Assembly (NCBI GenBank): GCA_965112735.1
Contig: OZ218957.1
Span: 2,790,001-2,854,000 of the forward strand
Reading direction: 5' to 3'
DNA length: 64,000 nucleotides
DNA from: Phaeosaccion multiseriatum
Taxonomy: Eukaryota > Protista > Ochrophyta, other classes
The translations under genes and the position numbers were made by a program. The notes beneath the pieces are model-generated. The model was not told the origin of the DNA and ran no database searches. It saw only the letters and a list, made by a program, of their open reading frames with translations. Below, piece after piece: positions 10,826-48,299 of the stretch (position 1 is the stretch's first letter; the number at the start of each line of letters is the position of its first letter).

Positions 10826-10861
<36 letters not shown>

Positions 10862-16566: not shown

Positions 16567-17568
16567 TCAGTCTTGGCAGTGGCAGGGGTGTCCGTTTGCA
16601 TGGACCCACTGCTTCATCTCCTCGAATACATCAGCCGGCATACCCCATCCAAGACCAGAAATGTCTTTGACGAACTGTGGACATGTCCACTCGTCCCAGG
16701 GAGCCCGCACCTCCTCCGATCGGAGCCACTTCAGCATGGGTAGGCTCTTGCCCCCCCGGACCGCCCAACAGCAGACATGTTCATCCCACCTGCACAGCTC
16801 CCGTGCGTTGGCATGCAGCCATTGCAGCACCTGTAGATTGCCTTCATTGGCGGCCAAGGAAGGTCCAGCCCTCCATTTGCTTAGTCCGGTTGCAGCCTCC
16901 ATCTGAGCTCTGACCTTGGGTTGGTGCACAATCATCTGTAGCATAGGAATACACCCCCCCAACACAGCCTCTGACCACATATTGGAATCAGGAGGACCCA
17001 TGAACCCTTCCTTCAGCAGCCACTCCAGAACCTCCACATTGTCGCACTTGACAGCGTGGATGCCCATGCCAGTTTCCGACCAAAGACATCGCCTCTTTCT
17101 GGGTACGTCCTCGAATCGCAACCACTTGAGGATACGCAGCCCATGTCGAGCATTCCTCACCGCGGCTTTGCAGGCCTCTTCGTCCCACGGACATTCCAGA
17201 CTGTGAAGCTCCTCGCACACGCTCACATCTCCGTACTCTGCCGCCGCCCTGAAAGTGCCCACACTCAGCTCGTACCCATACCCCTTGGCCCAATGCAAAC
17301 GCTCGACAGACTCAACAATGCTGGAAAATGTAGTCTCCCCTGAAGGATATGCCACACTGTAGTGCTCTTGCCACTCCTTACACACGGTGGCGAGGAAGGC
17401 GTGGTGGCCCTTCCCCACAAAGGGTATGACCAGGGACACGGCTTTCTGCATGACTTCCTCCATCCTCAAGGCCTTGGCCCTGACCGCGTACGTCTCCTGA
17501 AGCATCTTTTTTCGTACAGGTGCTGTTGCTTGTTGCTTCTTGATCCTCTTCCTCCCTAAGTGGCTCAC
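16567..17568 (-). CDS. Intronless ankyrin-like repeat protein (copy 2); first in-frame ATG near 17505
   Basis: Repeats of the type C..AA..G.L..L.WL....PWDE (e.g. CPWDEEACKAAVRN, AANEGNLQVLQWLHAN); F-box-like N-terminal FLATVCKEW segment. Confidence 0.75.
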   Translation of the reverse strand: MSHLGRKRIKKQQATAPVRKKMLQETYAVRAKALRMEEVMQKAVSLVIPFVGKGHHAFLATVCKEWQEHYSVAYPSGETTFSSIVESVERLHWAKGYGYELSVGTFRAAAEYGDVSVCEELHSLECPWDEEACKAAVRNARHGLRILKWLRFEDVPRKRRCLWSETGMGIHAVKCDNVEVLEWLLKEGFMGPPDSNMWSEAVLGGCIPMLQMIVHQPKVRAQMEAATGLSKWRAGPSLAANEGNLQVLQWLHANARELCRWDEHVCCWAVRGGKSLPMLKWLRSEEVRAPWDEWTCPQFVKDISGLGWGMPADVFEEMKQWVHANGHPCHCQD

Positions 17569-17787
17569 AGGGCCGACTCCGAATGACCAACGTGCCCTCG
17601 TAGTTTAAACCAGCAGACAAAAGAGAGGAAAAATCGAAGCCGTGCTTGGCGATCAAGCCCATCGTACACTTATCTCTCCGCGCCTGCCTTCTTCTTCCCC
17701 GGCAAAGTCAAACTTGTCCCCGTCCCTTCTCTCATCATATCAAACTTCACTAAAGAAACAGCTGACACCCTTCGGTATATCAGGCAT

Positions 17788-18888
17788 ATGGTGAACGCGA
17801 AGAGAAGGAAGGAGGAGTGCATGGAGGGGCGGGACCAGAAGCAGGACGACAAGCGGCTCCAGCCAGCTCCACCCACTGACTCCTCGGGGGCGGCAAAGCA
17901 TACTTTGCATGGAGGGGTGTCAGCAGCTCCACATCCCGCCGCCCTCGCTGCTGTAAGCGAGGGAAGCAATGTTGAGACTTTCGAAGCTTGCAACGAGACC
18001 CTGGCTCAGGCGGTGCTGCTCGGCGTAGTCATGGGGTGGACTGGTGGGGGCCATGATTTCTTCGTAGCGGCGGTGAGCAAAGAGTGGAAGGGACTCTACA
18101 GGCATCTCTTTCCGGCCAAGACAACGCTTCGCAGGAGGATGGTGGAGTCTGTGGAGCGCTTGAGCTGGGCCAGGAAATACGGGTGTGAGCTGAGTGTCAA
18201 GACGTTTGAAGATGCAGTCCAGTACGGAGATGTGGGTGTCTGCAAGGCTCTTCACAGCATGGGCTGTGCCTGGGATGCGAGAGTGTGTGAGGTTGCTGCG
18301 AGGAATGAGAGGCACGGACTCAGCATCCTCCAGTGGCTGCGGACGGAGGAACTTCCCGGCAAGAAAAGATGCTTGTGGGATGAACAAGTGTGTGACGAAG
18401 CAGCTGGACAGGGGAGGCTGGAGATGCTGGAGTGGATGCTCGCAGAAGAGGCGAATGCGCCATTTAATTACATGCTTTTGGCGGCATCTATTGAGTCGAA
18501 GCGTCTTTGTGTGGTCGAGTGGGTGTTGGAACATCCCAAGGTCAAAGCTCGGATGGAGGTGGCAGGAAAATGCAGCTGGTGGGGGTATGGGCCTGTCTGG
18601 GCGGCCATGCACAGCAATCTCGAAGTGCTGCAATGGTTTCATGCAAACGCACGGGAGCTGTTCAGATGGGGTGAGGATATCTGTGGTGATGCAGTGTATT
18701 CCGCAAAGAGCCTCTCCATGCTGAAATGGCTCCGCTCAGAGGAGGTCATGTGTCCCTGGGACAGGAGGGCATGCCCACACTCTTGGAAAGTCGAATTTGG
18801 TGATGACTGGGATATGCCCCCTGCCGCCTTTGAGGAGATGAAGCAGTGGGTGCATGCCAATGGACACCCCTGCGCCTGCGAGGACTGA
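17788..18888 (+). CDS. Intronless ankyrin-like repeat protein (copy 3), 366 aa
   Basis: Same repeat type (CLWDEQVCDEAAGQGRLEMLEWML), FVAAVSKEWK, and the shared C-terminus MKQWVHANGHPCACED. Confidence 0.8.
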   Translation: MVNAKRRKEECMEGRDQKQDDKRLQPAPPTDSSGAAKHTLHGGVSAAPHPAALAAVSEGSNVETFEACNETLAQAVLLGVVMGWTGGGHDFFVAAVSKEWKGLYRHLFPAKTTLRRRMVESVERLSWARKYGCELSVKTFEDAVQYGDVGVCKALHSMGCAWDARVCEVAARNERHGLSILQWLRTEELPGKKRCLWDEQVCDEAAGQGRLEMLEWMLAEEANAPFNYMLLAASIESKRLCVVEWVLEHPKVKARMEVAGKCSWWGYGPVWAAMHSNLEVLQWFHANARELFRWGEDICGDAVYSAKSLSMLKWLRSEEVMCPWDRRACPHSWKVEFGDDWDMPPAAFEEMKQWVHANGHPCACED

Positions 18889-27149: not shown

Positions 27150-29027
27150 ATGGTTGGGAGTGGGTCTCAGGCTGCGGAAGGTCCTGTCTTGTTGGTGTGT
27201 CCGTGTGTCCGAATACTACATTCGGAGAGCGAAGAGAGACGTTGTGTGTCTTGGCGTCGTGTGTTGCGCGGTGCTCCGGCTCTCATTCAAGAGCTTAGGA
27301 GAGTCATGTACGAGCTGCTTCCGACCTGGGGACCTCGCAAGGATGACAAAGGAAAGGTTGCCGCTGTTAGGGCCGGTTTTTGTACGTGTGCACCCCACGT
27401 CTCTCACCGACCTTCTGCCCTCTCCCTCCTCCCCCCTTTCCCTTTTCTCTCTTCCTCTCTCCTCTCTCTCTATCAATCTATCCATGTTTCGATGTACCTG
27501 CCTCTTTCCCTCCTTACCTCTCCTCTCGTATCTACCTCTCTCCTCCCCCCCTCCTTGGAATCCTTCTTCCCTCCATCCCTCCCTCAGGCTGATATTGTGA
27601 TACTCGTCTCCATTGGGGCTGGCGTCTTCGCTGGCAACCTCTTGCTCGGCCGTGCGGCCGCTCGCCTAAATGATCGGCGCCTCCGGGCAATGCGGGAGGT
27701 GGGCTCTGTCTACACACACGACCTCAGCAACAGGGCCAGGAGCCTGCTAATCAAGTACCGCTACCCGGAGCCCTCCACTTTTCTTGGTTGTGGTGTGCTT
27801 GATACCGATATCGATATCGACATTGAAGGCGCACAGCAGGTTGACGACGAGGACTATGACGAGGTAGAGGAGGAGGAGGAGGAGGAGGAGGGAAGGAATG
27901 GGGTAACGCAGCAAGAGGAGGCAGAGGGGGGGCAGGGAAGACAGGAACTAGGTTCTAATGTTGCCTGCAGCAGCAGTGAGAGGGAGCGAGAACACATGGG
28001 ATTGGGAGGAGGGGGAGGAGGGGGCGCCGATGATGCCGACATGGATGCGGCCGGGGCGTTGCCTGACTCAAGGGAAGCGAACGGGGCGAGGTCTTTGCTG
28101 TCCTGGGGCAACAGGAGGGACAGCACGCGGACAACCAACACGTCTGGTACCTTTCGGAGCTCCTGGCGTAGACGCTTGGGTAAGTGCCGCCCCCGGGCCC
28201 GGAGCAACAGCAGTCGCCCCACGGGCATTAGCTTCTCGCCGCATGGCTCCTTCACAAAGGGCGTACCGACGAAGTACACCGAAGCCAGGCTCGTACGAAG
28301 CGGAGACGAAGGAGGAGGGGGCTGCGGCGAAGACGACCAGGTAGTTGGGCAAAAGCAGCAGCAGCAGCAGCGACACTGTGGCTGCAACAGCACGTCACAC
28401 CCAAGTGAAGAAGAGGACGAGCATGTGTGTATGGAGAGGAGGGGGAGTCTGCATCACTTGGTTGCAGATAAGGATGGGAGGCCAGACAGGCTCAGCCAAG
28501 GTGACGGGGAGATGTGCCTGATCTGCCTCGAACCGTACCAACCGGGGGACGCGCTAGTGATGCTCCCGTGCAGACACGTCTTCCACGAGGCTTGTGCGGA
28601 GAGCTGGTTTGCCTCCCGCAAGACGTGCCCGCTGGACCGGCTTGATCTCAACGTGCTGGCTACGGAGATGGTCGAGGCGGAGAAGAGGGCGGCAGCAGCA
28701 GCGGCCGTAGCGAAGAAGCAGCGGAAGAAGGAGGAGCGAAAGCAGCAGCGCCAGCAGAAGCGGGAGCAGCGGCAGCAGCGGGGCAGGAAGGGACTCACGG
28801 GTCGTTTGGCTCGCAACATGAACAAAGCTCGGCACTGGAGGGGTGGGTGTGGGTCTCGGCGCGCTGTAGTGGCGGAGGGTGTGCCTGTGAGCAGCGGGAG
28901 TGCGCGCAGCACCGCAACGGGCCAGGAGCACTGCGACACCACCACCACCGGCACTGTCATCATGACCAGCCATTCATCCGTTGGGCACCTGCAACCCCAA
29001 TCACCACCAGGAGCAGCAACCGAGTAG
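27150..29027 (+). CDS. Transmembrane RING-H2 protein (putative E3 ligase); probable intron ~27357..27587, 5' end uncertain
   Basis: CLICLEPYQPGDALVMLPCRHVFHEACAESWFASRKTCPLDR (RING-H2 with last ligand Asp); hydrophobic IVILVSIGAGVFAGNLLLG after a pyrimidine-rich acceptor. Confidence 0.75.
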   Translation: MVGSGSQAAEGPVLLVCPCVRILHSESEERRCVSWRRVLRGAPALIQELRRVMYELLPTWGPRKDDKGKVAAVRAGFCTCAPHVSHRPSALSLLPPFPFLSSSLLSLYQSIHVSMYLPLSLLTSPLVSTSLLPPSLESFFPPSLPQADIVILVSIGAGVFAGNLLLGRAAARLNDRRLRAMREVGSVYTHDLSNRARSLLIKYRYPEPSTFLGCGVLDTDIDIDIEGAQQVDDEDYDEVEEEEEEEEGRNGVTQQEEAEGGQGRQELGSNVACSSSEREREHMGLGGGGGGGADDADMDAAGALPDSREANGARSLLSWGNRRDSTRTTNTSGTFRSSWRRRLGKCRPRARSNSSRPTGISFSPHGSFTKGVPTKYTEARLVRSGDEGGGGCGEDDQVVGQKQQQQQRHCGCNSTSHPSEEEDEHVCMERRGSLHHLVADKDGRPDRLSQGDGEMCLICLEPYQPGDALVMLPCRHVFHEACAESWFASRKTCPLDRLDLNVLATEMVEAEKRAAAAAAVAKKQRKKEERKQQRQQKREQRQQRGRKGLTGRLARNMNKARHWRGGCGSRRAVVAEGVPVSSGSARSTATGQEHCDTTTTGTVIMTSHSSVGHLQPQSPPGAATE

Positions 29028-30156: not shown

Positions 30157-33100
30157 CTAACTGCGGTAGGCTCCAAAGCCGTAGCTCTTCCCTTGACCAG
30201 AGGGTGCCGTTGATGATGATGACGACGATAGAACTGGTGACGATGCTACTGCTCCTGCGCTGCTGCTACTAGCTGCGAAGGGGGAATAGCTCGTCACGGG
30301 GGCTGGGGGGGTGGAGGAGGGTGGTGGTGATGATGGTACTGATGCCATTCCTCCTCCGGGGCTGCCACTGCGGTAGGCCCCGAAGCCGTAGCTCGGACTC
30401 GCTCCTCCTGAGCTGCTGGCTCTGCTGCTGATGCTGCTGGCTCCTGGCATAGGGGCAGAGCTCGTCACCGGAGCCGTCGCCGCTCGTGCCACCGGTGCAG
30501 GCGGTGCGACGGCCATTCCTCCTCCAGGGCTGCCGCTGCGGTACGCTCCGAAGCCATAGCTGGGAGACATGCCTCCTGAGCTGCTGCTGCTGCTGCCGCT
30601 GCTGCTGCTGGTGGCTCCCACAGGCGAGTAGCTCGCCATGGGAGCAGACGCTGCTGCCGGTGCTGCTGATCCGGACGACGAAAATGCCACTCCTCCAGGG
30701 CTGCCGCTACGGTAGGCCCCGAAGCCATAACTCCTGCCTCCTCCTCCGCTGGTGCCTCCGACCACAGGCGAGAAGCTTCTCGAGGGAGCTGACGATGATG
30801 GTCCGGAGCTGATGGGGTTGAATCCAAAGCCGGAAGAAGGAGAGCTGGACCCTGCGGATGAGGCTCCTGCTGCGCTGTCGCGGTAGGCTCCGAAGGGTGA
30901 GTAGCTCCTTGTGGCTCCTCCAGCGCCGATGCGGGTCGGTCCGGAAGGCGCAAAGTTCGATGGAGCAGACGATGACCGACCGGAAGGCGATGACGGTGGG
31001 ACGGCCATTCCCCCTCCAGGGCTGCCATCACGGTAGGCTCCAAAGCCGTAGCTGCGAGACATACCTCCTGAGCTGCTGCTGCTGCCGCTGGTGAGGCTGC
31101 TGGCTCCGGCAGAGGAGAAGCTCGACACAGAGGCAGTGGCTGATGGTGAAGATGAGGCGGAGGGCGGTACCGCCATTCCTCCTCCGGGGCTGCCCTCACG
31201 GTACGCCCCAAAGCCGTAGCTGGGAGACTTTCCTCCTGAGCTGCTGCTGCTGGCTCCGACAGGTGAGAAGCTCGTAGGGGGGGCAGCAGTAGAGGCTGCT
31301 GATCCCGAGCTGCTGGGGTTGAAGCCGAAGCCGGAAGAGGGAGAGCCCGTCGCGGATGCGGACGGTGGGACGGCCATTCCTCCTCCAGCGCTGCCGTCGC
31401 GGTAAGCCCCGAAGCCATAGCTCTTAGACATGCCTCCTGAACTGCTGATGCTGCTGCTGCTGGCTCCGACAGGCGAGAAGCTGGACACGGGAGCAGAAGC
31501 AGATGAAGATGCTGCTGGTGACGCGAAGGCGGACGGCGGTACTGCCATTCCTCCTCCAGGGCTGCCCTCACGGTACGCCCCAAAGCCGTAGCTCTTAGAC
31601 ATGCCCCCTGAGCTGCTGCTGGCTCCGACAGGGGAGAAGCTGGTTGGTGCAGAAGTAGCGGTTGCTGGTCCGGAGCTGCTGGGGTTGAATCCAAAGCCGG
31701 AAGAAGGAGAGCTGGTCACTGGGGCAGAGGGTACGACTGCCATTCCTCCTCCAGGGCTGCCGCTGCGGTATGCTCCAAAGCCATAGCTCTTAGACATGCC
31801 TCCTGAACTGCTGACGCTGCTGCTGCTGGCTCCGACAGGCGAGAAGCTGGACACGGGAGCAGAAGCAGATGAAGATGTTGCTGGTGGCGCGAAGGCGGAC
31901 GGCGGTACTGCCATTCCTCCTCCAATGCTGCCGTCACGATAGGCCCCGAAGCCGTAGCTCTTAGACATGCCTCCTGAGCTGCTACTGCTGGCTCCGACAG
32001 GGGAGAAGCTTGTAGGGGCAGAAGTACCGGTTGCTGGTCCGGAGCTGCTGGGGTTGAAGCCGAAGCCGGAAGAAGGAGAGCTGGTCACTGGGGCAGATGG
32101 TACGACTGCCATTCCTCCTCCAGGGCTGCCGCTGCGGTATGCTCCAAAGCCATAGCTCTTAGACATTCCACCGGAGCTGCTGCTGCCGCTGCTAAAGCTG
32201 CTTGCGCCAGGAGGCGAGTAGCTCGTCACGGGAGTGGGAGGAGCAGAAGGAGACGCTGCTGATGACGCAAAGGCGGACGGCGATGAGGCCATTCCTCCAG
32301 GGCTTCCTCCAGCAGGGTCGTCACGGTAGGCCCCGAAGCCATAGCTCAAGTAGTTCATGCCGCCTGCGCTACTACTGCTGCTGCTGCTGGCTCCGACAGA
32401 CGAGAAGCTCACGGGAGCGGACGCTGCTGGCGCGGCGGATCCGGACGGCGCGGATGTGGACGGTGGGACGGCCATTCCTCCTCCGGGGCTGCCGCTGCGG
32501 TAGGCACCGAAGCCATAGCTCTTAGACATGCCTCCTGAGCTGCTGCTGGTTCCGACAGGGGAGAAGCTGGTTGGAGCAGAAGTAGAAGCTGCCGGTCCCG
32601 AGCTGCTGGGGTTGAAGCCAAAGCCGGAAGAGGGGGAGCTAGGCGCTGACGCGGACGGTGCGACGGCCATACCTCCTCCAGGGCTGCCGCTGCGGTAGGC
32701 CCCGAAGCCATAGCTCTTAGACATTCCTCCTCCTCCTCCGCTGCTGGCTCCGGCAGGCGAGAAGCTCGTCACTGGGGCAAAAGCGGATGCTGCTGCTGGC
32801 GCGGCGGATCCGGACGGTGCGGATGCGGACGGTGGTGGGACGGCCATTCCTCCTCCGGGGCTGCCGCTGCGGTAGGCACCGAAGCCATAGCTCTTAGACA
32901 TGCCTCCTGAGCTGCTGCTGCTGGTTCCGAGAGGGGAGAAGCTTGTGGGGGCAGAAGTAGAGGTTGCTGGTCCGGAGCTGCTGGGGTTGAATCCGAAGCC
33001 GGAAGAAGGGGAGCTGGGCGCTGAGGCTGACGGCGACGCCATTCCTCCTCCAGGGCTGCCCTCACGGTAGGCCCCAAAGCCATAGCTGGGAGACATTCCT

Positions 33101-36100
33101 CCGGAGCTGCTGCTGCTGCTACTACTGCTGCCGCCAGGAGGCGAGTAGCTCGTGACGGGAGTAGAAGCAGACGCTGCTGCTGGTGAAGATGAGGCGGAAG
33201 GCGGTACTGCCATTCCTCCTCCCGGGCTGCCCGCACGGTAGGCCCCGAAGCCGTAGCTGGGCGACTTTCCACCTGAGCTGCTGCTGCTGCTGCCGCTGCT
33301 GAAGCTGCTGGCTCCGGCAGAGGAGAAGCTCGACACAGGAACAGTCACTGGTGATGGCACTGACGAGGATGGTGGAACGGCCATTCCTCCTCCAATGCTT
33401 CCGTCGCGGTAAGCTCCAAAGCCATAGCTCTTAGACATGCCTCCTGAGCTGCTGCTGGTTCCGACAGGCGAGAAGCTTGTTGGGGCAGAAGTAGAGGTTG
33501 CTGGTCCGGAGCTGCTGGGGTTGAAGCCGAAGCCGGAAGAAGGAGAGCTGGGCGCTGAGGCTGACGGCGACGCCATTCCTCCTCCAGGGCTGCCCTCACG
33601 GTAGGCCCCAAAGCCATAGCTGGGAGACATTCCTCCGGAGCTGCTGCTGCTGCTACTACTGCTGCCGCCAGGAGGCGAGTAGCTCGTGACGGGAGTAGAA
33701 GCAGACGCTGCTGCTGGTGAAGATGAGGCGGAAGGCGGTACTGCCATTCCTCCTCCCGGGCTGCCCGCACGGTAGGCCCCGAAGCCGTAGCTGGGCGACT
33801 TTCCACCTGAGCTGCTGCTGCTGCTGCCGCTGCTGAAGCTGCTGGCTCCGGCAGAGGAGAAGCTCGACACAGGAACAGTCACTGGTGATGGCACTGACGA
33901 GGATGGTGGAACGGCCATTCCTCCTCCAATGCTTCCGTCGCGGTAAGCTCCAAAGCCATAGCTCTTAGACATGCCTCCTGAGCTGCTGCTGGTTCCGACA
34001 GGCGAGAAGCTTGTTGGGGCAGAAGTAGAGGTTGCTGGTCCGGAGCTGCTGGGGTTGAAGCCGAAGCCGGAAGAAGGAGAGCTGGGCGCTGAGGCTGACG
34101 GCGACGCCATTCCTCCTCCAGGGCTGCCCTCACGGTAGGCCCCAAAGCCATAGCTGGGAGACATTCCTCCGGAGCTGCTGCTGCTGCTACTACTGCTGCC
34201 GCCAGGAGGCGAGTAGCTCGTGACGGGAGTAGAAGCAGACGCTGCTGCTGGTGAAGATGAGGCGGAAGGCGGTACTGCCATTCCTCCTCCCGGGCTGCCC
34301 GCACGGTAGGCCCCGAAGCCGTAGCTGGGCGACTTTCCACCTGAGCTGCTGCTGCTGCTGCCGCTGCTGAAGCTGCTGGCTCCGGCAGGCGAGAAGCTCG
34401 ACACAGGAACAGTCACTGGTGATGGCATTGACGAGGATGGTGGAACGGCCATTCCTCCTCCAATGCTTCCGTCGCGGTAAGCTCCAAAGCCATAGCTCTT
34501 AGACATGCCTCCTGAGCTGCTGCTGGTTCCGAGAGGGGAGAAGCTTGTGGGGGCAGAAGTGGAGGTTGCTGGTCCGGAGCTGCTGGGGTTGAATCCAAAG
34601 CCGGAAGAAGGGGAGCTGGGCGCTGAGGCTGACGGCGATGCCATTCCTCCTCCAGGGCTGCCCTCACGGTAGGCCCCAAAGCCATAGCTGGGAGACATTC
34701 CACCTGAGCTGCTGCTGCTGCTGCTGCTGCTGCTGCCGCCAGGAGGCGAGTAGCTCGTGACGGGAGTAGAAGCAGACGCTGCTGATGAAGATGAGGCGGA
34801 AGGCGGTGATGCCATTCCTCCTCCAGGGCTGCCCTCACGGTAGGCGCCAAAGCCGTAGCTGGGAGACACTCCACCTGAGCTGCTGCTGCTGCTGCTGGTG
34901 CCGCTGCTGAAGCTGCTGGCGCCAGGAGGCGAGTAGCTCGTCACAGGGACAGTTGCTACTGATGGCATTGAAGAGGTGGGCGCTGATGCCATTCCTCCTC
35001 CAATGCTGCCGTCACGATAGGCCCCGAAGCCGTAGCTCTTAGACATGCCTCCTGAGCTGCTACTGCTGGCTCCGACAGGGGAGAAGCTGGTTGGTGCAGA
35101 AGTAGCGGTTGCTGGTCCGGAGCTGCTGGGGTTGAATCCAAAGCCGGAAGAAGGAGAGCTGGTCACTGGGGCAGAGGGTACGACTGCCATTCCTCCTCCA
35201 GGGCTGCCGTCGCGGTAGGCTCCAAAGCCATAGCTCTTAGACATGCCTCCTGTGACGCTGACAGCAGGGGAGTAGCTCCTGACCACAACAGGCGCTGCTG
35301 GTGAAGATGAAGCGGCCGGTGGGGATGCCATTCCCCCTCCGGGGCTGCCATCGCGGTAGGCTCCAAAGCCATAGCTGGGAGATGCTCCTCCTGAGCTGCT
35401 GCTGCCGCTGCTGCTGATGCTACCGCCGCTGGCTGCGACAGACGAGAAGCTCGACACGGGAGCAGGCGCGGAGGGTGACGCAAAGGCAGAGGGCGATGAG
35501 GCCACTCCTCCGGGGCTGCCGTCGCGGTAGGCTCCGAAGCCGTAGCTCTTAGACATGCCTCCTGAGGTGCTGCCTCCGACAGGTGAGAAGCTCGCCACGG
35601 GAGCAGACGTAGAGGCTGCTGGTCCGGAGCTGCTGGGGTTGAAGCCGAAGCCGGAAGAGGGGGAGCTAGGTGCTGATGCCATTCCTCCAGAGCTTCCTCC
35701 AGCAGGCTCGTTGCGGTAGGCTCCAAAGCCGAAGTCTGTAAAGCGGGAAGGGCTCTTGTTCATGATCGAGTAGCTCGTCACAGGGACGCCAGTCAGTGGT
35801 GACACTGGCGCTTTTGCTGCGGGTGCGGATGCCATTCCTCCTCCAGGGCTGCCCTCTCGGTAGGCTCCAAAGCCGTAGTTCGTAGACATGCCTCCTGAGG
35901 AGCTGCTGCTGCTGCCGCCGCTGATGAAGCTGCTCGTGCTGCTGCTGGCTCCGGGAGACGAGAAGCTCGATACAGGGGCAGTGGCTGATGAGGAAGATGA
36001 GGAGGAGGGCGGCACTGCCATTCCTCCTCCGGGGCTGCCCTTGCGGTAGGCCCCGAAGCCATAATCGATCGACATTCCTTCTGCTGCTGCCGCTGCGCTG

Positions 36101-39100
36101 CTACTACTGCTGCTGCTACCGCTGCCGTATCCCGAAGGAGAGTAGGCAGAAGGTACTGCCATTCCGCCTCCGGGGCTGCCGCTGCGGTAGGCCCCGAAAC
36201 CGTAGTCAACCGACGCACCTCCTGGGCTGCTGCTGCTGGCTCCGCCAGGCGAGAAGCTCGTTGGGGCAGAAGTAGAGGCTGCTGGTCCGGAGCTGCTGGG
36301 GTTGAAGCCGAAGCCGGAAGAAGGGGAGCTAGGTGCTGATGCCATTCCTCCTCCAGAGTTTCCTCCAGCAGGCTCGTTGCGGTAGGCGCCAAAGCCGAAG
36401 TCTGTAAAGCGGGAAGGGCTCTTGTTCATGATCGAGTAGCTCGTCACAGGTGTGCCTGTCAGTGGCGAAATTGGCGCTGATGCGGGCGGTGCGACGGCCA
36501 TTCCTCCTCCAATGCTGCCGTCGCGGTAGGCTCCAAAGCCGTAGTTCGTAGACATGCCTCCTGAGGAGCTGCTGCTGCTGCTGCCGCCGCCGCTGGTGAA
36601 GCTGCTCGTGCTGCTGCTGGCTCCGGGAGACGAGAAGCTCGATACAGGGGCAGTGGCCGATGAGGAAGATGAGGAGGAGGGCGGTACTGCCATTCCTCCT
36701 CCGGGGCTGCCCTTGCGGTAGGCCCCAAAGCCATAATCGATCGACATTCCTTCTGCTGCTGCCGCGCTGCTACCGCTGCTGCTGCCGTATCCCGAAGGGG
36801 AGTAGGCGGACGCCGACGCCGACGCCATTCCTCCTCCGGGGCTGCCGCTGCGGTAAGCTCCGAAGCCGTAATCGGCCGACATTCCTCCTGAGCTGCTGCT
36901 GCTACTGCTGCTGCTGGCTCCGGCGGACGAGAAGCTCGACACTGGAGCGGGTGCTGAGGGTGACGCAAAGGCAGAGGGCGACGAGGCCATTCCTCCTCCA
37001 GAGCTTCCTCCAGCAGGCTCGTTGCGGTAGGCGCCAAAGCCGTAGTCTGCGAAGCGGGAAGGGCTCTTGTTCATGATGGAGTAGCTCGTCACAGGTGTGC
37101 CTGTCAGTGGTGACACTGGCGCTTTTGCTGCTGGTGCGGATGCCATTCCTCCTCCAGGGCTGCCCTCTCGGTAGGCTCCAAAGCCGTAGCTCGGAGACAT
37201 GCCTCCTGAGCTGCTGCCACTCGCCCCAACAGGGGAGGAGAAGCTTGTCTTGGGAGCAGAAGTAGACGCTGCTGCTGCTGCTGGTGGTGGTGGTGGTGGC
37301 GTGGCGGGGTTGAATCCGAAGCCGTTAGACGAGCTGGTCACTGGAGCTGAGACTTGTGCCATTCCTCCTCCAGGGCTGCCGCTGCGGTATGCTCCAAAGC
37401 CGTAGTCTGCTGTGGCTGCGGATCCAGAGGGGGATGTCGCCATTCCTCCAGGGCTGTTGCCGCCGCTGCTGGCACGGTGATCTCCTCCAAAGGGGGAGTA
37501 GCTCTTCTTCATTCCTCCTCCGCTGCTGCTGCTGGCTCCCGCAGGCGCGAAGCTCGGCACGGGAGCAGAAGTAGTAGCTGCTGGGCTCGAGCTGCTGGGG
37601 TTGAATCCGAAACCATTAGAAGAAGAGCTCGTCGCTGGTGCTGAGGGTGGTGCTGATGCCATTCCTCCTCCAGGGCTGCCGCTGCGGTATGCTCCAAAGC
37701 CGTAGCTCGGAGACGCTCCACCTGAGCTGCTGCTGCTGCTCGCGCTGCTGCTGCTGCCTCCACTGGTGAAGCTGCTCGTGCTGCTGCTGCTGGCTCCGGG
37801 AGACGAGACGCTCGACACAGGGGCAGTGGCCGATGAGGAAGATGAGGAGGACGGCGGTACTGCCATTCCTCCTCCGGGGCTGCCCTTGCGGTAGGCCCCG
37901 AAGCCGTAGTCTGCGAAGCGGGAAGGGCTGTCCTTGTTGTTGTTCATAATCGAGTAGCTCGTCACAGGGGCGCCGGTCACGGGTGACACTGCCGCTGTTG
38001 CGGGCGGTGCGACGGCCATTCCTCCTCCGATGCTGCCGTCACGGTAGGCTCCAAAGCCGTAGCTCGGAGACGCTCCTCCTGAGCTGCTGCTGCTGCTGCT
38101 GCTGCTGCTGGCTCCGGGAGACGAGAAGCTCGATACAGGGGCAGTGGACGATGAGGAAGATGAGGAGGAGGGCGGTACTGCCATTCCTCCTCCGGGGCTG
38201 CCCTTGCGGTAGGCCCCAAAGCCATAATCGATCGACATTCCTTCTGCTGCTGCGCTGCTGCTGCCGCCGCCGTATCCGGAAGGCGTGTAGCTCGCGGACG
38301 ACACGGCCGGCGAGGCCATTCCTCCTCCAGGGCTGCCCTCACGGTACGCCCCAAACCCATAGCTGGGAGACGCTCCTCCTCCGCTGCTGCCGGTGCTACT
38401 GCTGCTGCCACTGCTGGCTCCGGCAGGCGAGAAGCTCACCTTGGGAGCAAACGCCGCCGGTGAGGAAGAGGAGGCGGAGGGCGGTACTGCCATTCCTCCT
38501 CCAGGGCTGCCCTCACGGTAGGCCCCAAAGCCATAGCTCGGCGACATTCCTCCTGAGCTGCTGCTGCTGCTACTGCTGCTGGCTCCGGCGGACGAGAAGC
38601 TCGACACGGGAGCGGGTGCTGAGGATGAAGAGAAAGCGGACGGCGCTGATGCCATTCCTCCTCCAGAGCTTCCTCCAGCAGGCTCGTTGCGGTAGGCGCC
38701 AAAGCCGTAGTCTGCGAAGCGGGAAGGGCTCTTGTTCATGATGGAGTAGCTCGTCACAGGTGTGCCTGTCAGTGGCGACACTGCTGACTCGCTGCGGTAG
38801 GCCCCGAAGCCATAGCTCCTCGTTCCTGAGCTGCTGGTACTGGTGCTGCTGAAGCCGCTAGGGGAAAAGCTGGTCCTTGGGGCGGGCGGAGCTGCTGCTG
38901 CCACTGGTGCTGGTGCGAACGCCGCTCCTCCAGAGGGGGGGCTGCCGTTGCGGTAGGCTCCGAAGCCGTAGTCTCCAAAGCGGGAAGGGCTGTCCTTGTT
39001 GTTGTTCATAATCGAGTAGCTCGTCACAGGGGCGCCGGTCACTGGCGACACTGCTGCCGTTGCGGGTGGCATCAGTGACATGCCTCCAATGCTGCCGCTG

Positions 39101-42100
39101 CGGTAGGCCCCGAAGCCGTAGCTCACAGGCGCTGAGCTGCTGCTGCTGCTGGTGCTGACAGTAGTTGTTGCTGGGGGGGTGGAAGGGTTGAATCCAAAGC
39201 CGGAAGAAGCGGAAGTCGGTGGTGGGGGTGATGCCATTCCTCCTCCGGGGCTGCCGCTGCGGTGGTCACCCCACGGAGCGTAGCTCTTACCCGCCCCTCC
39301 TGCGCTGCCAGCTGCTGCTGCTGCGCCACTTGCGCTTGCTCCTGCTCCTGCTCCGCCAACGGGAGTGTAGCTGACAGCGGGGGGAGGCGGTGCTGACACA
39401 GGTGCTGATTTGATCGAAACGGTGCTGGTGCTGGTGGTACCCGTGCTGCTGGTGGTGCTGGTGGAGTGGTCACCGCCGAAACGGGCATAGCTCCTCGCCA
39501 TGTCTCCCGCACTGCTCTGGTAGGCGCCGATGGGAGGAGAAGGGGGGCTCACCGGAGCCGGGGGCGCTGGAGACACGGGGGCGGAGGGTTCCACTTCCAC
39601 TCGGCCAGGGCTGCTGCTCCGATGATCTCCTCCGAAGCGCGAGTAGCTCTTGCCGGTAGGAGCGCCGTTGCTCGAGGGTGCAGCTGCTGCTGGCTGCTGG
39701 TGATGAAGCGGTGGTGCCACACCTCCGGAGCTGGCGCGGCTGTCCTTGTAAGGAGAGTAGCTGGTCACGGGCGCCGTGGCTGGAGGCGCTTGCTGCTGCT
39801 GGGGTGGCGGTGCCTGCGGTCGTGGCGGGGCTTGAGGTCGTGGTGCGCGTACCGCAGGCGTGATGCCTGAAACGGTGCCGAAGTCTCCAAAGGCGGGTTG
39901 GCTGCGAGTACGGCTCGAAGACGACTGATTTCCGCTGCCGGCGTTGTTGGCGCCACGGTCATCACCAAAGAAGGCGTTGCGCGTCAAGACCTTGTTGTGG
40001 GAGGTGCGGTAGGCGCCGAAGGAGGAGTAGCTCCTGACGATGACGGGCGGCTCGCCCGAGGGAGGGCCGGAGCGGTAGTCACCGAATCGTGAGTAGCTCT
40101 TGCTTGCAGGAGGGGCGGGCGCGGGGGCGACAGGTGCCGTGGTGGGTGTGCTGCCTCCTGCTCCGCTGTCGCGATTGAATCCGAAGGGCGGGGGTGAGCT
40201 GCTCGCTGGTGCCGCCGGTGGTGGCGGTGGCGGTGAGGACGACGATACCGGGCGGCTGTAGTCACCGAAGCGACTGTAGCTCTTCTTGGCAGGAGGAGAT
40301 GCGGGTGGTGGGGCTTGCGCCTGGGGGGGGGGCGGGGGAGGGGGCGCTGCTCTTCCTGCTGGTGGTGGTGGTGGGGGCGCTCTCGCTCCTCCTCCTCCTC
40401 CGGGGCTGCTGCGGTAGTCGCCGAAGCGGCTGTAGCTCTTGGGAGGTGGGCTAGGTGCTTGGGCTGGGGGCATCGGTGGTGCTCCTGCTGCTGACGCGCC
40501 CTGAGGAGCGGCGTTACCACCGCCGAAGAAGGCGCCGGAGCCGACGGGAGGACGTTGAACAGGTGCTGCCCTGACGGGTGCCGCAGGTCGAGCTTGAGGT
40601 GGGGGCGGAGGCCTTGCGGCAGGGGGGGCTTGGGGTCGTGCAGATGAGCCGGTGGGGCCGCGGTAGGCTCCGAAGGGAGAATAGCTCTTGCGCCCCTGCT
40701 GCTGCTGCTGCTGCTGCTGTTGCTGTTGCTGCTGCTGTTGCTGTGCTGCCCGCTGCTGTTGCTGCATTGCTGCTGCTGCTGCTGCCTGTGCCTGGCCTCC
40801 CTGCTGGGGTGGCCTTGCTACCTGTCCTCCCTGCTGGGGCGGCTGCTGCTGCATGCGTGCTTGTGGCGGTTGGGGGGCGCCGGGGGGGGCTCTGGGGGGG
40901 GCGTTGGCGGCCGCAGCCTGCCTGAGCTGCTGCTGCTGCCGCTCCAGCTGCTGCTGCTGCTGAAGCACCAACTGCTGCTGCTCCTGGTAACTGCTCTCGG
41001 TGTCGAACTGAGGAGTGGGGAAAGAGTGGAGGTGGGGTGGGGAGGGGAGGGGAGGGAGGGCAGGAGAGGAGAGGACGGAGAGGGTGAGTGAAATTGGTAT
41101 TCGACGTTTCGTTCGCGCGTGGAGCACGGTGTACATGCACAAACACGCACGCGCACTACACAAGCCGCTCGACATTTACGTCATAAATCGAGGCAAGCAG
41201 GAAGTCATGGCAGAAGGAGGAGGGCATGCGCACCCACACACACACAGAGACAGAGGCTGACAAGTGCAGGAGGAGTAGAGTATGCATGCACACACACACA
41301 CAGAGACAGAGAGAGACGGAGGTTGACAAGTGCAGGAGGAGTAGAGTATGCATGCACACACACACACACACATGTAACACAAGAGAAATAGCCCCCCTTG
41401 CATTGCGTGCACTCCTCCTTCTGCACTCCTCCTTGCCTCAACATGACGTCCAAGAGCAGAAGGAAGAGGACACGCACGCACACACACACACACGCAACAC
41501 GAGAGACAAAAGGAATAGATCCCCCCGCTTGTGTGGCATGTGTGTGTGTGTAAATGTGCATGCCCTCCTCCTCCTGCCCCACCCACGCATCATGTCGGAG
41601 AGCGCAGAAGGGAGGTGCAGCCAGCCCAACCCAACCCAACCGCCATCACATCTCAACCCCCTCCCTCCTCAGTGTACTAACCTTTGATGCTTGCTGTGCG
41701 GCGAAGAGGGCCACAGCCCCGGCTCCTACACCGAGCTCCACCTTGTTGTCCTCAACGAACGCGCCCACGTCGCCACCTCCGGCGTCCTTCCACACCTTCT
41801 GGATGGTGGTGGAGAACATGGTATTGATCTCGTCACTGCCATCGCCAACCTGCTGCATTGCCTTACTGCCTGCTTGCTGCACCGCCTCGCTGCCTGCTTG
41901 CATGGCGTCGCTGCCTGCTTCCTGCATGTACTCGGTGCCTGCTTCCTGCATAGCCTCGCTGCCTGCCTGCATGGCGTCGGTGCCGGCTTGCTGCATGGCC
42001 TGTGTCGTCTGCTGCACGGCCTCTGTGGCTGCTGAAGTCGCTGACCCGGCACTCTGCATCGCATCTACCGCTACGTCCGCCGACTGCGTCTGCACCACAT

Positions 42101-43322
42101 CCACTACTGCCTCCACCGTCTCTGTAACGGCGGGGACGGCGTTGCTTGCTGCTGCTGTTACTGCTGTCACCGCATTTACCGCTGCCTCGGCCACCTCTGG
42201 GATGGCGTCGGGAGGAGGCGCTGAGGAGGCCGCTGTTGACGCTGCTGCTGCTGCCGCCGCTGCCGCCGCTGCTGCTCCTGCTGCTACTGCTGGAACACTG
42301 GAGGGCTTCTTGGGCTCCAACACCACACCGTACGGAGTTGTACCCCCCACTGCTTTCTCGAACATTACCTCCTTCAGCTTGGGTTCTCGCGGACCCGGTG
42401 CAGGTGCCTCGACCACCTTGGCCGGGACAGGGGCAGGCTCAGGCTTTGGCACAGGCGCAGGCGCCTCCACCTTCTTGACCTGCTGCACCTCCGGCTCTGC
42501 TGCCGTTGTAGGAGCGGCCGCCTTTGCTGGAGGCACAGTCAGAGGCAAGCCGGAAGAGTGATGATCCACCACGGCCCAGCCCGAGTCCATGAGCGGATCT
42601 TGCCGGTAGGTGAAGCTGTACCGCGCGTCCCCCACCGTGCGATCTGTTTCGCCAGGGGACACCCACGAGTAGGAGTAGTAGCCCGTGTTGATGGCCACCG
42701 TGTTGGTAATCATGCGCGCATTTGGCCGGTTGTTGGACAGCTGCAGCTCGGGCAGCTTGGCAAAGAAGGTCAAGTAGTCCAAAATCTCCTTGGGCGTGGT
42801 GCGCATCTCCTCCGGGCCCCACAGCACCGCATCCTTCCCATACAACTTGGCCGCCTGCTGAGCAGCGTCCTTCTCCCCCGACCCCAGCGTCCTCAACCAT
42901 TCGTCCGTGGCAGACAGCACGCCATCCAGCTTGGTGGGGGCCGGCGCTGCGGCTGTCCCTTCCTCCCCCCCCTCCTCTGCACGTGCCGCGGCTGCTTGCA
43001 GTCCCGCCATGCCCGCAAATGCGGCCGCCGCTGCCCCCCGCACGCTAAGTTCAAACGCCTCCAGCACCGACTCCCTAGTCACGCTACCCCCCCCCCTGGC
43101 GGCCATCTCCGCCGCGCTCTCTGACTCCCATACCTCCCTCCCCGTCCCCTTGAGCACTCCCGGTGTTCCCTGCTGCGAGCGCGTACTGCCAGACACCAAC
43201 CGCCCTCGAAAAGGAGCTCCAGACACTAAACGAGAGGTGGGCAACTGAAAGGCTTGCACACTACTTGTGCCGGCGAAGCCCGCCACCGCGGCAAAGCCGC
43301 AGCAGTAGCTAGGCACCCTCAT
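30157..43322 (-). CDS. Giant (~4160 aa) plastid-targeted iota-carbonic-anhydrase-domain / YGFGAYR-repeat protein; exons 41682..43322 and 30157..41007
   Basis: Donor AAG|gttagt at 41682/41681 and acceptor ccccactcctcag|TTC at 41008/41007 are both phase 0. Signal peptide plus VQA|FQL. COG4875-like domain (LYGKDAVLW..R.TP.EI.DY..FF..INTGYYSY..ARYSFTY..WAVVDHHSSGLP). The 10.85-kb second exon is uninterrupted and has ~50 [YF]GFGAYR motifs. Confidence 0.8.
32870..35000 (-). repeat. Near-perfect 534-bp (178-aa) coding tandem repeat, ~3.5-4 units, inside the giant exon
   Basis: Sequence at 33301 recurs at 33835. Alternative-frame ORFs at 33345, 33879 and 34413 are offset by exactly 534, and the first two translate identically. 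Confidence 0.9.
42545..42930 (-). other. Iota-class carbonic anhydrase-like (SnoaL/CaMKII association-domain fold) domain within the giant gene
   Basis: Diagnostic ARYSFTY and HHSSxxP motifs of COG4875/LCIP63-type proteins. Confidence 0.82.
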
Positions 43323-43977: not shown

Positions 43978-46063
43978 CCCAGACAAACACTGACAAGAAA
44001 CACACAAACACACACACGACAAATAAACACACAGGTACAGACACCACGCATTTGCACAGCCCGCGCGCACACACACACACACACGCGGGGCGCGGCACTT
44101 GTCTCACTTACCCTTGCACACACGCGCGCGGCACTTGCCTCACTTACCCTTAAAGAGCTCCGCCCGATTGAGAGCAGCACCGTGGACTTGACAGCACACA
44201 TGGTCCAAGGCGTTGCGCCGTCTCCATTACCGCCCGTCCCATCGACGGCAGAGTGCACGTGTGTGGCAGAGAGGAGAACATCCTGCAAAGAGGAGAGGGC
44301 AGTTTGCCCACCATAGTCCACCGCGCCTCGTCTGCAGACTCTCTCCCACTCTTTGCTTGCTCATGGTGCTCATGGTCGCTGCAACCAAGTCGATACCGTG
44401 ATAGCTCACTATCTCCGCCAGAGGCAGGGCCTTGCCGCAAGCCTCACGCGTCTCGATACTCCGGCACTTGCACCACCTCTTTGACGCCAAGTCCGGTTAG
44501 TCGAGCGTAGCATAGCCTCGGGGGGGGGCGAGCTGGAGCCTTCTCGCCACCCTCCTTTCGGTCCCGCCCCCTCCCCCTTTACGCCCTGTGAAGCGATGGC
44601 GCTGCCCGCTGACATTCAGATAGGGCTGCTGAGATGTTTATTGAAACCTCGGGGAAGGGAGTGAATGGGGCGTTCTTCCTCCTCCATTTTTCCCTATTCT
44701 TCCTTAAATGAGGGACGGTCGGAGGACTGAGAAAAGGAAGGACAGTAGAGGGAAAAGGAGAAGCAGCAGTACAGGACCACCTCAGAAAGGTAGAGTACTT
44801 CGGGGGGGGGGGGGAGTGTATACTAACCTCCTGCACCAGTCTTCTTGTGACTTGTTATTTTCAAATTTCAAATACACATCACCAGCTGGTGATCTTGAGA
44901 CGTTGGTGATTCGCTCACACAGCGTTACTTTTGGACAACCATAGATGGCATTAGGAGTGCGATCCATCTTCGCGCGGGAGATTTGGCGTAGGACACTCGC
45001 AGGCACTCACTGCGTCCCTTTGCTTCGCTCGGAGGAGATTGGCGTGTCTTTGGAATAAACCCAGGGGCGGTCATCAGTGGATATTGCTGTTAGGCAGCAC
45101 AGATGGCACCAAACCAAAGGGTGAAGGGTGAAGGAGCAGGATGGCACCAAATGAATCCACACACCCCTCTTCTCTTCGTGCGAAGTATGCTGGACCAAAG
45201 GAGCTCTGTCCTGTCCCCGCTCCTTTCTGCCCTCCCCTTCTGACGCGGCACAAAAAGCCTTGGCACTCTTCCATCACCATGACTTCACTTCACTTCAGTG
45301 CACTTCGTGCCATCCATGCCAAGCTGCCGGAGCACTCTCATCTGTTCCCAAAATACCACAGCCCTGCTGCTCTGGCTGCTGCTGCTGCTGCTGCTCGAGA
45401 GCGGCCACACAGTAAAGTGAAACGCTCACTGAGCGACAGCCCCTCCCTCCCTCCCTCCCTTACTCACTCACTCACCCTCTCCTCTTTCTTCAAAATTGTG
45501 CGCAGCCCCCACCGCCCGCCCCGCCGCGCCTCCCTCCTGTACAATATTGCAAGACAGGGCGTTATCCTCACTCCTGTCTGTGTGTCTGCCTGTCCACCTG
45601 TGTGTGTGTGGCGTGGTGTTGTCTGGCTGGCCACCTCCTCGTCAACAGAGGGAAGGTCGCGCCAAATGCGCAAAGCGGGTGGGGAAGACAGGCGGGTACG
45701 GTATACCACCAGTGGCAGCAATCCGCGGTGGCACTGGTCCATCTCCCTCCCTCCCTCCCTCTTTCTCTCTCTCCCTCTCTGAAATGGAAGGAAGGCTACG
45801 GAGGCCTACAGACCACATTCTTGGCTCCGCACCGTGCCTCTTCTAACCACAACTCTCTCTCTCTCTTGTCCCTTTCGTTCCCACTCCCCTCTTCATATGC
45901 CTCTCGTCTCCCTTTCCCCTCACAACCACACCCCCAACCCAAGTCCCCCATATGCCTACGCCGCCCCGCTTTGGCAGTCTCTTCTTCGCTCTGCCATACC
46001 TCTCTCCCTCCCTCTCTTCCTCTCCTCTGCCCCATCCACTGCCATCCCCTCTCTGTCTGTCTC

Positions 46064-48299
46064 TCAGCCCTGCATCTGTGCATACTCCTTGAGAATGCTG
46101 CTGGCAATGACCAGATGCTGCACCTCGGATGTGCCCTCGTATATCTGACAGTAGAGACATATAGGGAGAGAAGAGGCGTATGGGTGGGGAGGGTAGGGGA
46201 GGGAGAGTACAGGCGTATGGGTGGGGAGGGCAGAGGAGAGAGAGTAGAGGCGTATGGGTGGGGAGGGTAGAGGAGAGTGAGTAGAGGCGTATGGGTGGGG
46301 AGGGTAGAGGAGAGAGTAGAGGCGTATGGGTGGGGAGGGTAGAGGAGAGAGTGAGTACAGGCGTATGGGTGGGGAGGGTAGAGGAGAGAGAGTAGAGGCG
46401 TATGGGTGGGGAGGGCAGAGGAGAGAGAGAGTAGAGGCGTATGGGTGGGGAGGGTAGAGAAGAGAGAGAGTAGAGGCGTATGGGTGGGGAGGGCAGAGGA
46501 GAGAGTAGAGGCGTATGGGTGGGGAGGGCAGAGGAGAGAGAGAGTAGAGGCGTATGGGTGGGGAGGGTAGAGGAGAGAGAGTAGAGGCGTATGGGTGTGG
46601 AGGGCAGAGGAGAGAGAGTAGAGGCGTATGGGTGGGGAGGGTAGAGGAGAGAGAGTAGAGGCGTATGGGTGGGGAGGGTAGAGGAGAGTGAGTAGAGGCG
46701 TATGGGTGGGGAGGGTAGAGGAGAGAGAGTAGAGGCGTATGGGTGGGGAGGGTAGAGGAGAGAGAGTAGAGGCGTATGGGTGTGGAGGGCAGAGGAGAGA
46801 GAGTAGAGGCGTATGGGTGGGGAGGGTAGAGGAGAGAGAGTAGAGGCGTATGGGTGGGGAGGGTAGAGGAGAGTGAGTAGAGGCGTATGGGTGGGGAGGG
46901 TAGAGGAGAGAGAGTAGAGGCGTATGGGTGGGGAGGGTAGAGGAGAGAGAGAGTACAGGCGTATGGGTGGGGAGGGTAGGGGAGGGAGAGTAGAGGCGTA
47001 TGGGTGGGGAGGGTAGAGGAGAGAGAGGAGAGGCGTATGGGTAGGGAGGGCAGAGGAGAGAGAGTAGAAGCGTATGGGTGGGGAGGGCAGAGGAGAGAGA
47101 GAGTAGAGGCGTATGGGTGGGGAGGGTAGAGGAGAGAGAGAGTAGAGGCGTATGGGTGGGGAGGGTAGAGGAGAGAGAGAGTAGAGGCGTATGGGTGGGG
47201 AGGGAAGAGGAGAGAGTAGAGGCGTATGGGTGGGGAGGGCAGAGGAGAGAGAGTAGAGGCGTATGGGTGGGGAGAGCAGAGGAGAGAGAGAGTAGAGGCG
47301 TATGGGTGGGGAGGGTAGAGGAGAGAGAGAGAGTAGAGGCGTATGGGTGGGGAGGGCAGAGGAGAGAGAGTAGAGGCGTATGGGTGGGGAGGGCAGAGGA
47401 GAGAGAGTAGAGGCGTATGGGTGGGGAGGGTAGAGAAGAGAGAGTAGAGGCGTAAGGGTGGGGAGGGCAGAGGAGAGAGAGTAGAGGCGTATGGGTGGGG
47501 AGGGTAGAGAAGAGAGAGAGTAGAGGCGTAAGGGTGGGGAGGGCAGAGGAGAGAGAGTAGAGGCGTATGGGTGGGGAGGGTAGAGAAGAGAGAGAGAGTA
47601 GAGGCGTATGGGTGGGGAGGGTAGAGGAGAGAGCGTAGAGGCGTACGGTGAGGATCAGGAGAAGCGGCACGGCACGGCTCGCATGAGAGGTGCAAAACGC
47701 AGTAAGAGTCGGGGAGAGACGAGGGAGGCCTGATTGGGTGTACCTCAGTAAACCCCACAAACTACACACGCAGCAGGCAAGGCCCCAACGGTTACCATCA
47801 CTTCGGAGGTTCCAACAGAGAGCGCATCAGGTGACGGAGAGGCGCAGATGCGAACCGCTTCCCTCTCATTCTCCTCTCCCCTCCACTCCCTTCCTTTGTC
47901 ATCTCTCCTCCCCTCCCCTCTCTCCTGTCCTCTCCTCTCTGCAGTAACGTACCTCTGTAATTCGAGCGTCGCGGTAGTGCCTCTCCGCCGGCATCTCAGT
48001 CACGTAACCCTGTGGGATGGGGTGAAAGGGTGTGCGATGGTGTGTAAACAAGTGTGCACAAGGTACAGCAGTGGTAGTGGGGTGGAAACGGTGTGTCGCG
48101 GTGATACACTAAGAGGGTGTAGGCGTTGAGATATTGTACAGGGCCCCTCCCTCCCTCCCTCCCTCCCTCCCTGATCCTCTCCCAAAGCCAACGCACCATT
48201 CCCCCCAGGACTTGTATGGCTTGGTGCGAGCAGAACGTAGCGGCCTGCAAAGAAGAACGAAGCGATTCACAGAGACCAAGACGCAGCAGTAGTAGGAGT

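Follow-up and report, generated by a model that had tools for sequence, protein, structure and literature searches.

A 64-kb window of contig OZ218957.1 of the ochrophyte alga Phaeosaccion multiseriatum, within which all coordinates given here are counted, carries on its minus strand a giant gene (43322 down to 30157) that combines a carbonic anhydrase (CA)-like domain with a long array of short repeats. The gene and its predicted architecture are real and unusual, and the locus is most likely one nuclear gene of two exons, as judged from its reading frames and splice signals. The predicted product begins with a plastid-type leader and a divergent domain of the iota-CA family that has probably lost its catalytic function, and continues through a disordered, basic array of about 61 units, each built around a short aromatic and Arg-containing motif (the sticker). 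Sequence features and analogy suggest, tentatively, a plastid scaffold resembling CcmM of cyanobacteria, with a pseudo-CA domain as its hub and a multivalent array of stickers that would tether or condense Rubisco. By analogy with known linker proteins a pyrenoid role is a plausible and reasonable hypothesis, and a specific function in binding Rubisco or building a pyrenoid lies on the unlikely side. Splicing, a plastid location, the loss of CA activity, a hub function and a Rubisco client are what we infer, each with the strength given where it is discussed.

Gene model and splice signals

The gene extends over two open reading frames (ORFs), and its parts are listed below with the basis of each assignment (lengths in amino acids, aa, or nucleotides, nt; a slash inside a motif marks a cleavage or splice junction).

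41646-43322, minus strand: ORF 1, 558 aa to an in-frame stop
30157-41175, minus strand: ORF 2, 3672 aa, an 11-kb open frame
43251-43322, minus strand: start codon and predicted signal peptide (aa 1-24), cleavage VQA/F with Phe at +1, read directly from the translation
43131-43250, minus strand: transit-peptide-like stretch (aa 25-64) with 5 Ser, 4 Thr, 5 Arg, 1 Lys, 0 Asp and 1 Glu, from composition
42513-42965, minus strand: single divergent iota-CA-like domain (COG4875 / CaMKII-AD / NTF2-fold), from PDB, homologue, AlphaFold and Foldseek matches
42810-42821, minus strand: active-site loop LWG-PEE with a two-residue deletion, from two alignments of relatives and the HMMER alignment to 3h51
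41736-42512, minus strand: acidic low-complexity linker, Pro/Ala-rich with poly-Ala and (AMQxAG)n, from translation and composition
41697-41735, minus strand: short hydrophobic patch LGVGAGAVALFAA (aa 530-542) just before the donor, from the translation
41008-41681, minus strand: predicted phase-0 intron of 674 nt with (GT)n microsatellites and a polypyrimidine tract, from matrix scores
40678-41007, minus strand: Q-rich stretch at the start of exon 2 (aa 1-110 of exon 2), from the translation
39118-40677, minus strand: degenerate Pro-rich N-terminal repeats with variant stickers (KSYSRFGDYR, KSYSPFGAYR, KSYAPWGDHR and others), from the repeat listing
30160-39117, minus strand: canonical array of 51 units on SYGFGAYR-x-GSPGGGMA, from the unit alignment
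30157-30159, minus strand: stop codon of the giant gene, from the translation

The predicted donor, AAG/GTTAGT, has its first intron base at 41681, and the stop codon of ORF 1 lies 12 codons farther on. The predicted acceptor consists of a long polypyrimidine tract followed by CAG/TTC, with the last intron base at 41008, and the reading frame is open from this point onward. Splicing at these sites would give a product of 547 + 3616 = 4163 aa with a mass of ~395 kDa. An in-frame ATG is present at 41175, and the next 56 codons up to the acceptor (41175-41008, minus strand) are translated polypyrimidine tract; this ATG may mislead an automatic gene caller into placing a start there, with the locus split into two genes as the result.

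Splice sites were scored with position matrices trained on 11 homology-supported introns (100-374 nt) of the neighbouring topoisomerase II gene, whose donors are of the (A/C)AG/GT(G/T/C)(A/G)G(T) type, one of them being an identical AAG/GTTAGT, and whose acceptors have a polypyrimidine tract followed by CAG or TAG. Within the interval 40900-41800 the best donor was 41681 and the best acceptor 41008, and the two also formed the best in-frame, stop-free pair. When the identical training donor was removed (leave-one-out), donor 41681 scored 11.8, a value reached or exceeded at only 12 of the 6570 GT sites on both strands of the whole window, several of which are true topoisomerase donors; it is the sole strong minus-strand donor between 30157 and 43322. 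Since donors of this strength are expected by chance at only ~0.09 per kb per strand, one placed 33 nt before the stop of ORF 1 is unlikely to be fortuitous. GC content at the three codon positions failed to tell exon from intron. From the splice signals, the two-exon model that joins both ORFs through 41681 and 41008 is likely to be correct. The same model had been put forward in an earlier sequence-only reading of this DNA, and its coordinates, its phase 0 and its exon lengths of 547 and 3616 aa were all correct on re-examination, with donor and acceptor each scoring highest in the interval and lying in phase. The order of parts described there (signal peptide, iota-CA-like domain, linkers, hydrophobic patch, Q-rich stretch and ~3500 aa of repeats) was also found in full.

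Leader, iota-CA-like domain and linker

Directly after the predicted signal peptide cleavage site lie 38 residues that are rich in Ser, Thr and Arg and free of acidic residues. A Phe at +1 followed by an acid-free stretch of this kind is the stromal signature of red-type complex plastids (the ASAFind and HECTAR criteria), and on the strength of this leader the product is probably targeted to the plastid. The plastid-type N-terminus claimed in the sequence-only reading, VQA/F followed by the Ser/Thr/Arg-rich, acid-free stretch, is present as described. A plastid-type ASA/FAP leader also occurs in some ochrophyte relatives of the CA-like domain.

Over residues ~130-260 the protein is similar to 3H51, a COG4875 protein of Xanthomonas, with an E-value of 3.8e-9 (phmmer, PDB), and a HMMER search of 1.84 billion representatives returned 462 relatives, 81 of them at E<=1e-10 and the best 47-52% identical, with named relatives from Ectocarpus and Chrysoparadoxa. 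AlphaFold, given an 84-sequence alignment, modelled the domain with a predicted local distance difference test score (pLDDT) of 95.1 and a predicted template-modelling score (pTM) of 0.86, and the best Foldseek match of the model was again 3h51 (E 6.5e-12, template-modelling score 0.73-0.78), followed by NTF2-like proteins and CaMKII hubs. The 3H51 protein has been treated as an apparent iota-CA, and the diatom enzyme has been modelled on it (PMC8395977, PMC8132391). Because the 3H51 sequence match, the relatives, the AlphaFold fold and the Foldseek result agree, membership by descent of the iota-CA/COG4875 family is secure on sequence and model grounds, and the homology claimed in the sequence-only reading stands. 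The HMMER comparison of exon 1 proposed in that reading had a divided outcome, with a significant match to 3h51 and a CaMKII_AD (PF08332) score of 14.2 bits (E 0.05) that fell below the cut-off of 22.1; other Pfam models were likewise sub-threshold, and TIGR02246 of NCBIfam did not match the domain. CaMKII_AD is matched by all 14 aligned relatives, unlike the domain of the giant protein, and the missed CaMKII_AD and TIGR02246 thresholds are in keeping with the divergence of the latter.

Crystallography and mutagenesis define four active-site residues in this family, namely Thr, Tyr, His and Ser, and the replacements T106A and T486A abolish the activity of both assayed metal-free iota-CAs, as does Tyr-to-Ala (PMC8132391). 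The catalytic Thr, numbered T106 in All2909, T486 in Bn86287 and Thr62 in Tp, is kept in 82 of 83 aligned relatives and is deleted in the giant protein, where the loop reads LWGPEEMR in place of the LWGTVSEE-R of the relatives and is left without any Ser or Thr. The gap falls at the same loop position in the HMMER alignment to 3H51. The Ser near the catalytic Thr, found in 74 of 84 sequences, is replaced by Pro, and the Phe that adjoins the catalytic Tyr (82 of 84 sequences), which as Tp Phe78 in the diatom numbering lines the CO2 pocket (PMC8395977), is replaced by Leu. The catalytic Tyr itself (Y124/Y503) is kept, as in all 84 sequences, and the presence of DHHSS means that the His and Ser of the HHSS motif are also kept, as in the ochrophyte relatives. 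Because the essential Thr is deleted and the Ser and Phe are replaced, the domain is probably a pseudo-enzyme and not an active CA. These three changes weaken the claim in the sequence-only reading that the polypeptide generates CO2.

In a group of brown-alga-type paralogues (P0070, P0080, P0095 and P0119) extra residues are inserted immediately behind the catalytic Thr and the HHSS motif has degenerated (to HCTFS, HYSFA or HCSFS), with the domain embedded in acidic low-complexity and coiled-coil proteins. From these sequences, the iota-CA fold appears to have been converted repeatedly to non-catalytic modules in the brown-alga-type group.

The linker between the domain and the donor (residues ~263-547) is acidic, with an isoelectric point (pI) of 4.25 computed for exon-1 residues 271-547, and contains a 69-nt tandem repeat at 41867-41997. 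It matched no Pfam family, and searches of NCBIfam and PDB gave noise alone. The 13-residue hydrophobic patch near its end has a 19-residue Kyte-Doolittle mean of ~1.1 (hand calculation) and lies outside the top hydropathy windows of exon 1; being so short and too weakly hydrophobic, it is not a standard membrane span.

The repeat array and its likeness to known scaffolds

The array holds ~61 units altogether, ~10 of them degenerate and Pro-rich and the following 51 canonical, and the last sticker is the C-terminal end of the protein. The unit consensus is S-x-S-Y-G-F-G-A-Y-R-x-G-S-P-G-G-G-M-A, followed by a Ser/Ala/Pro spacer, a poly-Ser run and GGM; the spacer holds a second motif, V-[T/S]-S-[F/Y]-S-P, or GFGFNP...TSFSP in 15 units. 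Exact GFGAYR cores number 51 and GFGFN motifs 15, both far beyond chance, and the core-to-core spacing is 35-107 aa with a median of 57.5. The repeats contain 31% Ser, 18% Gly, 13% Ala and 11% Pro and no Cys, and the repeat region has a pI of 9.9. The 51 GFGAYR cores are encoded by 20 nucleotide versions with exclusively synonymous differences among them, while the flanking positions vary. That the core versions differ only synonymously is direct evidence for translation of the frame and for purifying selection on the GFGAYR peptide motif itself. A single unit, modelled with AlphaFold using 28 units as the alignment, gave a pLDDT of 54 and a pTM of 0.11 with no helix or strand, and the repeat array is disordered according to this model. 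The stretch 32914-34815 contains three super-repeats of 534 nt (three units, 178 aa) with 98% identity, besides a fourth with 88%. This points to recent expansion or gene conversion, which makes that part of the array young, and the near-identity of the copies carries a risk of a wrong assembled copy number.

The repeats gave no Pfam, NCBIfam or PDB sequence match, noise alone being returned. Word-indexed protein searches with residues 100-290 of exon 1 and 560-1100 of exon 2 found nothing and are uninformative on distant relatives because low-complexity words took up all of the 8000 candidates allowed; they do indicate that the collection contains no identical protein of the allowed lengths. 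An identity as an FG-nucleoporin was considered and set aside, since no anchoring domain is present and the array is linked by its splice signals to an exon that encodes a signal peptide.

The sequence-only reading had held that no described protein combines such parts, a statement that overlooked CcmM, in which a gamma-CA domain is followed by 3-5 SSUL modules that bind and condense Rubisco in cyanobacteria. In some cyanobacteria the CA domain of CcmM has no activity of its own and forms an oligomeric hub to which another CA is recruited. If the predicted splice is real, the giant protein shares with CcmM, in architecture only, a CA-family domain and a linear repeat array on one polypeptide, and its dead-looking domain would match the inactive, hub-type CA domain of those species. 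The two differ in that CcmM has a gamma-type left-handed beta-helix CA and the giant protein an iota-type NTF2 fold, and in that 3-5 folded SSUL domains stand against ~61 disordered units with a 7-residue sticker and without an RbcS-like Pfam match. The giant gene is moreover eukaryotic and nuclear and has a predicted intron. On these sequence features the giant protein is an analogue of CcmM, not a homologue. Iota-CAs are themselves the carboxysomal CAs of some bacteria.

In being disordered, basic and repetitive with a regularly spaced short motif, the array resembles the pyrenoid linkers EPYC1 (Chlamydomonas), PYCO1 (Phaeodactylum), CsLinker (Chlorella) and SUPA1 (Ulva). The search criterion for such linkers (FLIPPer) asks for repeated elements 20-120 residues apart, and the spacing of 35-107 aa falls within this window; the pI of the repeat region (9.9) is close to that of PYCO1 (10.03), and the charge also matches that of EPYC1. 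The linker-like physical features named in the sequence-only reading (disorder, basic charge and a conserved motif every ~57 aa) were recovered. The aromatic stickers of PYCO1, KWSPRGGS and GTGYNP, which are set among Gly, Ser and Pro, loosely resemble YR-x-GSPGGGM and GFGFNP, a motif likeness that may serve as a lead. The giant protein differs from the known linkers in valency (~61 vs 5-6), in length (3616 aa vs ~300-600), in that no helix-forming sticker is predicted in its unit, and in its enzyme-like domain, which the known linkers do not have.

The head of the protein has the same fold and family as the iota-CAs (LCIP63 of Thalassiosira, Bn86287 of Bigelowiella, All2909 of Anabaena, COG4875/COG4337 and 3H51), and shares a plastid-type leader with LCIP63. 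It differs from them in being a single domain, in place of 3-4 tandem domains, in its deleted catalytic Thr and replaced Ser and Phe, and in its fusion to a giant disordered array. CsoS2 of alpha-carboxysomes is likewise large and disordered, and through its short repeated motifs it binds Rubisco and gives the compartment its organisation; it is bacterial, ~900 aa long and without a CA-like domain, and its repeats are unrelated.

Alternative readings, neighbouring loci and significance

If the CcmM-like scaffold reading is right, the product would enter the endoplasmic reticulum through its signal peptide and pass on to the plastid stroma, where the pseudo-CA head would form an oligomerisation hub or dock active iota-CA paralogues. 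A hub or docking role would be the most economical because domains of this family dimerise and oligomerise through their beta-sheets, meeting via a beta-sandwich interface to form dimers and higher oligomers (PMC8395977). With its ~61 units the basic disordered array would be a scaffold of very high valency, able to condense or tether a multivalent partner, and would present the aromatic/Arg sticker YGFGAYR every ~57 residues with Ser/Gly/Ala/Pro spacers between. The best-fitting partner would be Rubisco, and the protein would then be a functional analogue of CcmM, EPYC1, PYCO1 and CsLinker.

A number of observations weigh against this scaffold reading. The valency of ~61 and the mass of ~395 kDa are ten-fold beyond those of the known linkers (5-6 stickers), and we know of no precedent for the import of a protein of ~395 kDa across four membranes. 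The stickers of known linkers are structured or helix-forming and none such is predicted for the YGFGAYR units, and 31% Ser together with Pro also fits a secreted, O-glycosylated structural protein. Some relatives of the domain end in a C-terminal membrane tail, and exon 1, if read through to its own stop, would likewise finish with the hydrophobic patch and a few polar residues, in agreement with a gene that stands alone. The loss of activity is deduced from distant assayed homologues. No domain relative with the same fusion was found, the best 150 of the 462 relatives being at most 954 aa long, and neither the repeat-unit alignment nor exon 1 found a relative in the JGI metagenomes. A pyrenoid in the source alga cannot be assumed.

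The locus might instead comprise two genes, one for a 558-aa plastid iota-CA-like protein and one for a giant low-complexity protein with its own start and no plastid signal, which would form a cytosolic or nuclear condensate. The stop of exon 1 only 12 codons past the putative donor would suit such an arrangement, as would the read-through C-terminus, whose patch and short Arg-containing tail resemble the anchors of P0041 and P0006, and the in-frame ATG at 41175 with further Met codons in the Q-rich part of ORF 2; sequences that are Q-rich and FG/YG-rich also occur in nucleoporin-like and stress-granule proteins. The arrangement is nevertheless improbable, as it leaves to coincidence both a donor of that strength just before the stop and a best acceptor placed in phase exactly where coding-like sequence begins, makes a protein start of 56 residues out of translated polypyrimidine tract, and relies for the anchor on a patch of just 13 residues. 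A fused plastid protein with an active iota-CA domain, which would make CO2 and condense Rubisco as well, is very unlikely. Its family, its confidently predicted fold and the retained catalytic Tyr and HHSS His and Ser speak for activity, and the mechanism of the diatom Mn-type iota-CA is not as clearly established as the metal-free one; against it stand the deletion of a Thr essential in two enzymes from a loop with no Ser or Thr left, the two further changes at near-invariant pocket positions, and the missed CaMKII_AD and TIGR02246 thresholds, the former passed by 14 of 14 aligned relatives. [quoted passage not shown]

Two other readings concern the location and the client of the protein. 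The composition of the repeats (31% Ser, 11-13% Pro, 18% Gly), the size, typical of extracellular matrix proteins, and the orphan, lineage-specific character of the repeat family would fit a secreted structural or adhesive glycoprotein of the wall, scales or mucilage, with O-glycosylated Ser/Pro repeats and Tyr/Phe cross-links as in resilin, and the regular spacing of Tyr within its Gly-rich motifs recalls elastomeric or adhesive proteins. This is quite unlikely in view of the Phe at +1 with its acid-free Ser/Thr/Arg stretch, which is the red-type plastid signature, the plastid-targeted members of the N-terminal domain family and the lack of Cys in the repeats. A plastid or periplastidial scaffold unrelated to Rubisco, which might organise membranes, a different condensate or a layer of iota-CA surrounding the plastid, would have the same targeting features and scaffold anatomy as the CcmM-like reading; iota-CAs take envelope or periplastidial positions in other algae, and the short hydrophobic patch could give a peripheral membrane association. 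No positive evidence points to any alternative client, and the sticker spacing and basic charge match those of Rubisco linkers, which makes this reading, too, distinctly improbable.

Among the neighbouring loci, the topoisomerase II gene (2900-12400, minus strand) has at least 13 introns of ~100-490 nt and is about equally distant (50-57% identity over all exons) from its counterparts in brown algae, oomycetes, a pelagophyte, a dinoflagellate and plants, with the C-terminal region closest to Choristocarpus (53%); at identities of this level, no close sequenced relative is present in the collections. About 2.5 kb upstream of the start of the giant gene lies a strongly strand-biased minisatellite (45796-47769, GC skew ~+0.6), which yields a spurious 657-codon ORF with a repeat-type translation and no Pfam match. 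A RING-H2 finger ORF (27150-29027, plus strand) faces the giant gene's 3' end in convergent orientation, and an exact look-up found no identical record in protein collections for this ORF or the exon-1 ORF. With no hit above 53% identity in the full representative search, the collections can be taken to contain neither the source genome nor its transcriptome. Two ankyrin-repeat ORFs and an RPE65/carotenoid-cleavage-dioxygenase exon are also nearby (loci at 16567-18888, and at 57420-59264 on the plus strand). The RING-H2, ankyrin and RPE65/dioxygenase neighbours have no evident link to carbon concentration.

To our knowledge, linkers of pyrenoids arose several times in evolution without any common sequence; few have been described, and in the red-plastid lineage PYCO1 is the sole known linker and is not conserved even among diatoms. 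The design of a CA module joined to a scaffold is known from its bacterial precedent; new, as predicted from the sequence, would be the fusion of an iota-CA-family module to a disordered scaffold and the orphan repeat family. In its fullest form, with the CcmM design reached independently in an unsampled algal lineage with a red-type plastid, the giant protein forming the pyrenoid matrix, the stickers binding form ID Rubisco and the head oligomerising and docking an active iota-CA, which would anchor the CO2 source at the Rubisco condensate, the proposal is unlikely. If it were true, carboxysomes and pyrenoids would have converged on a CA-like hub with Rubisco-binding repeats, and the protein would be the first linker of a eukaryote to carry a CA-family module and would far exceed all known linkers in valency; it would add a new short sticker motif for form ID Rubisco and offer a natural test of the effect of extreme valency on condensate properties. 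Even without a link to Rubisco, the gene would clearly exemplify the conversion of an enzyme fold to a non-catalytic module, and it has a repeat array of 9 kb whose core of six residues is kept invariant by selection.

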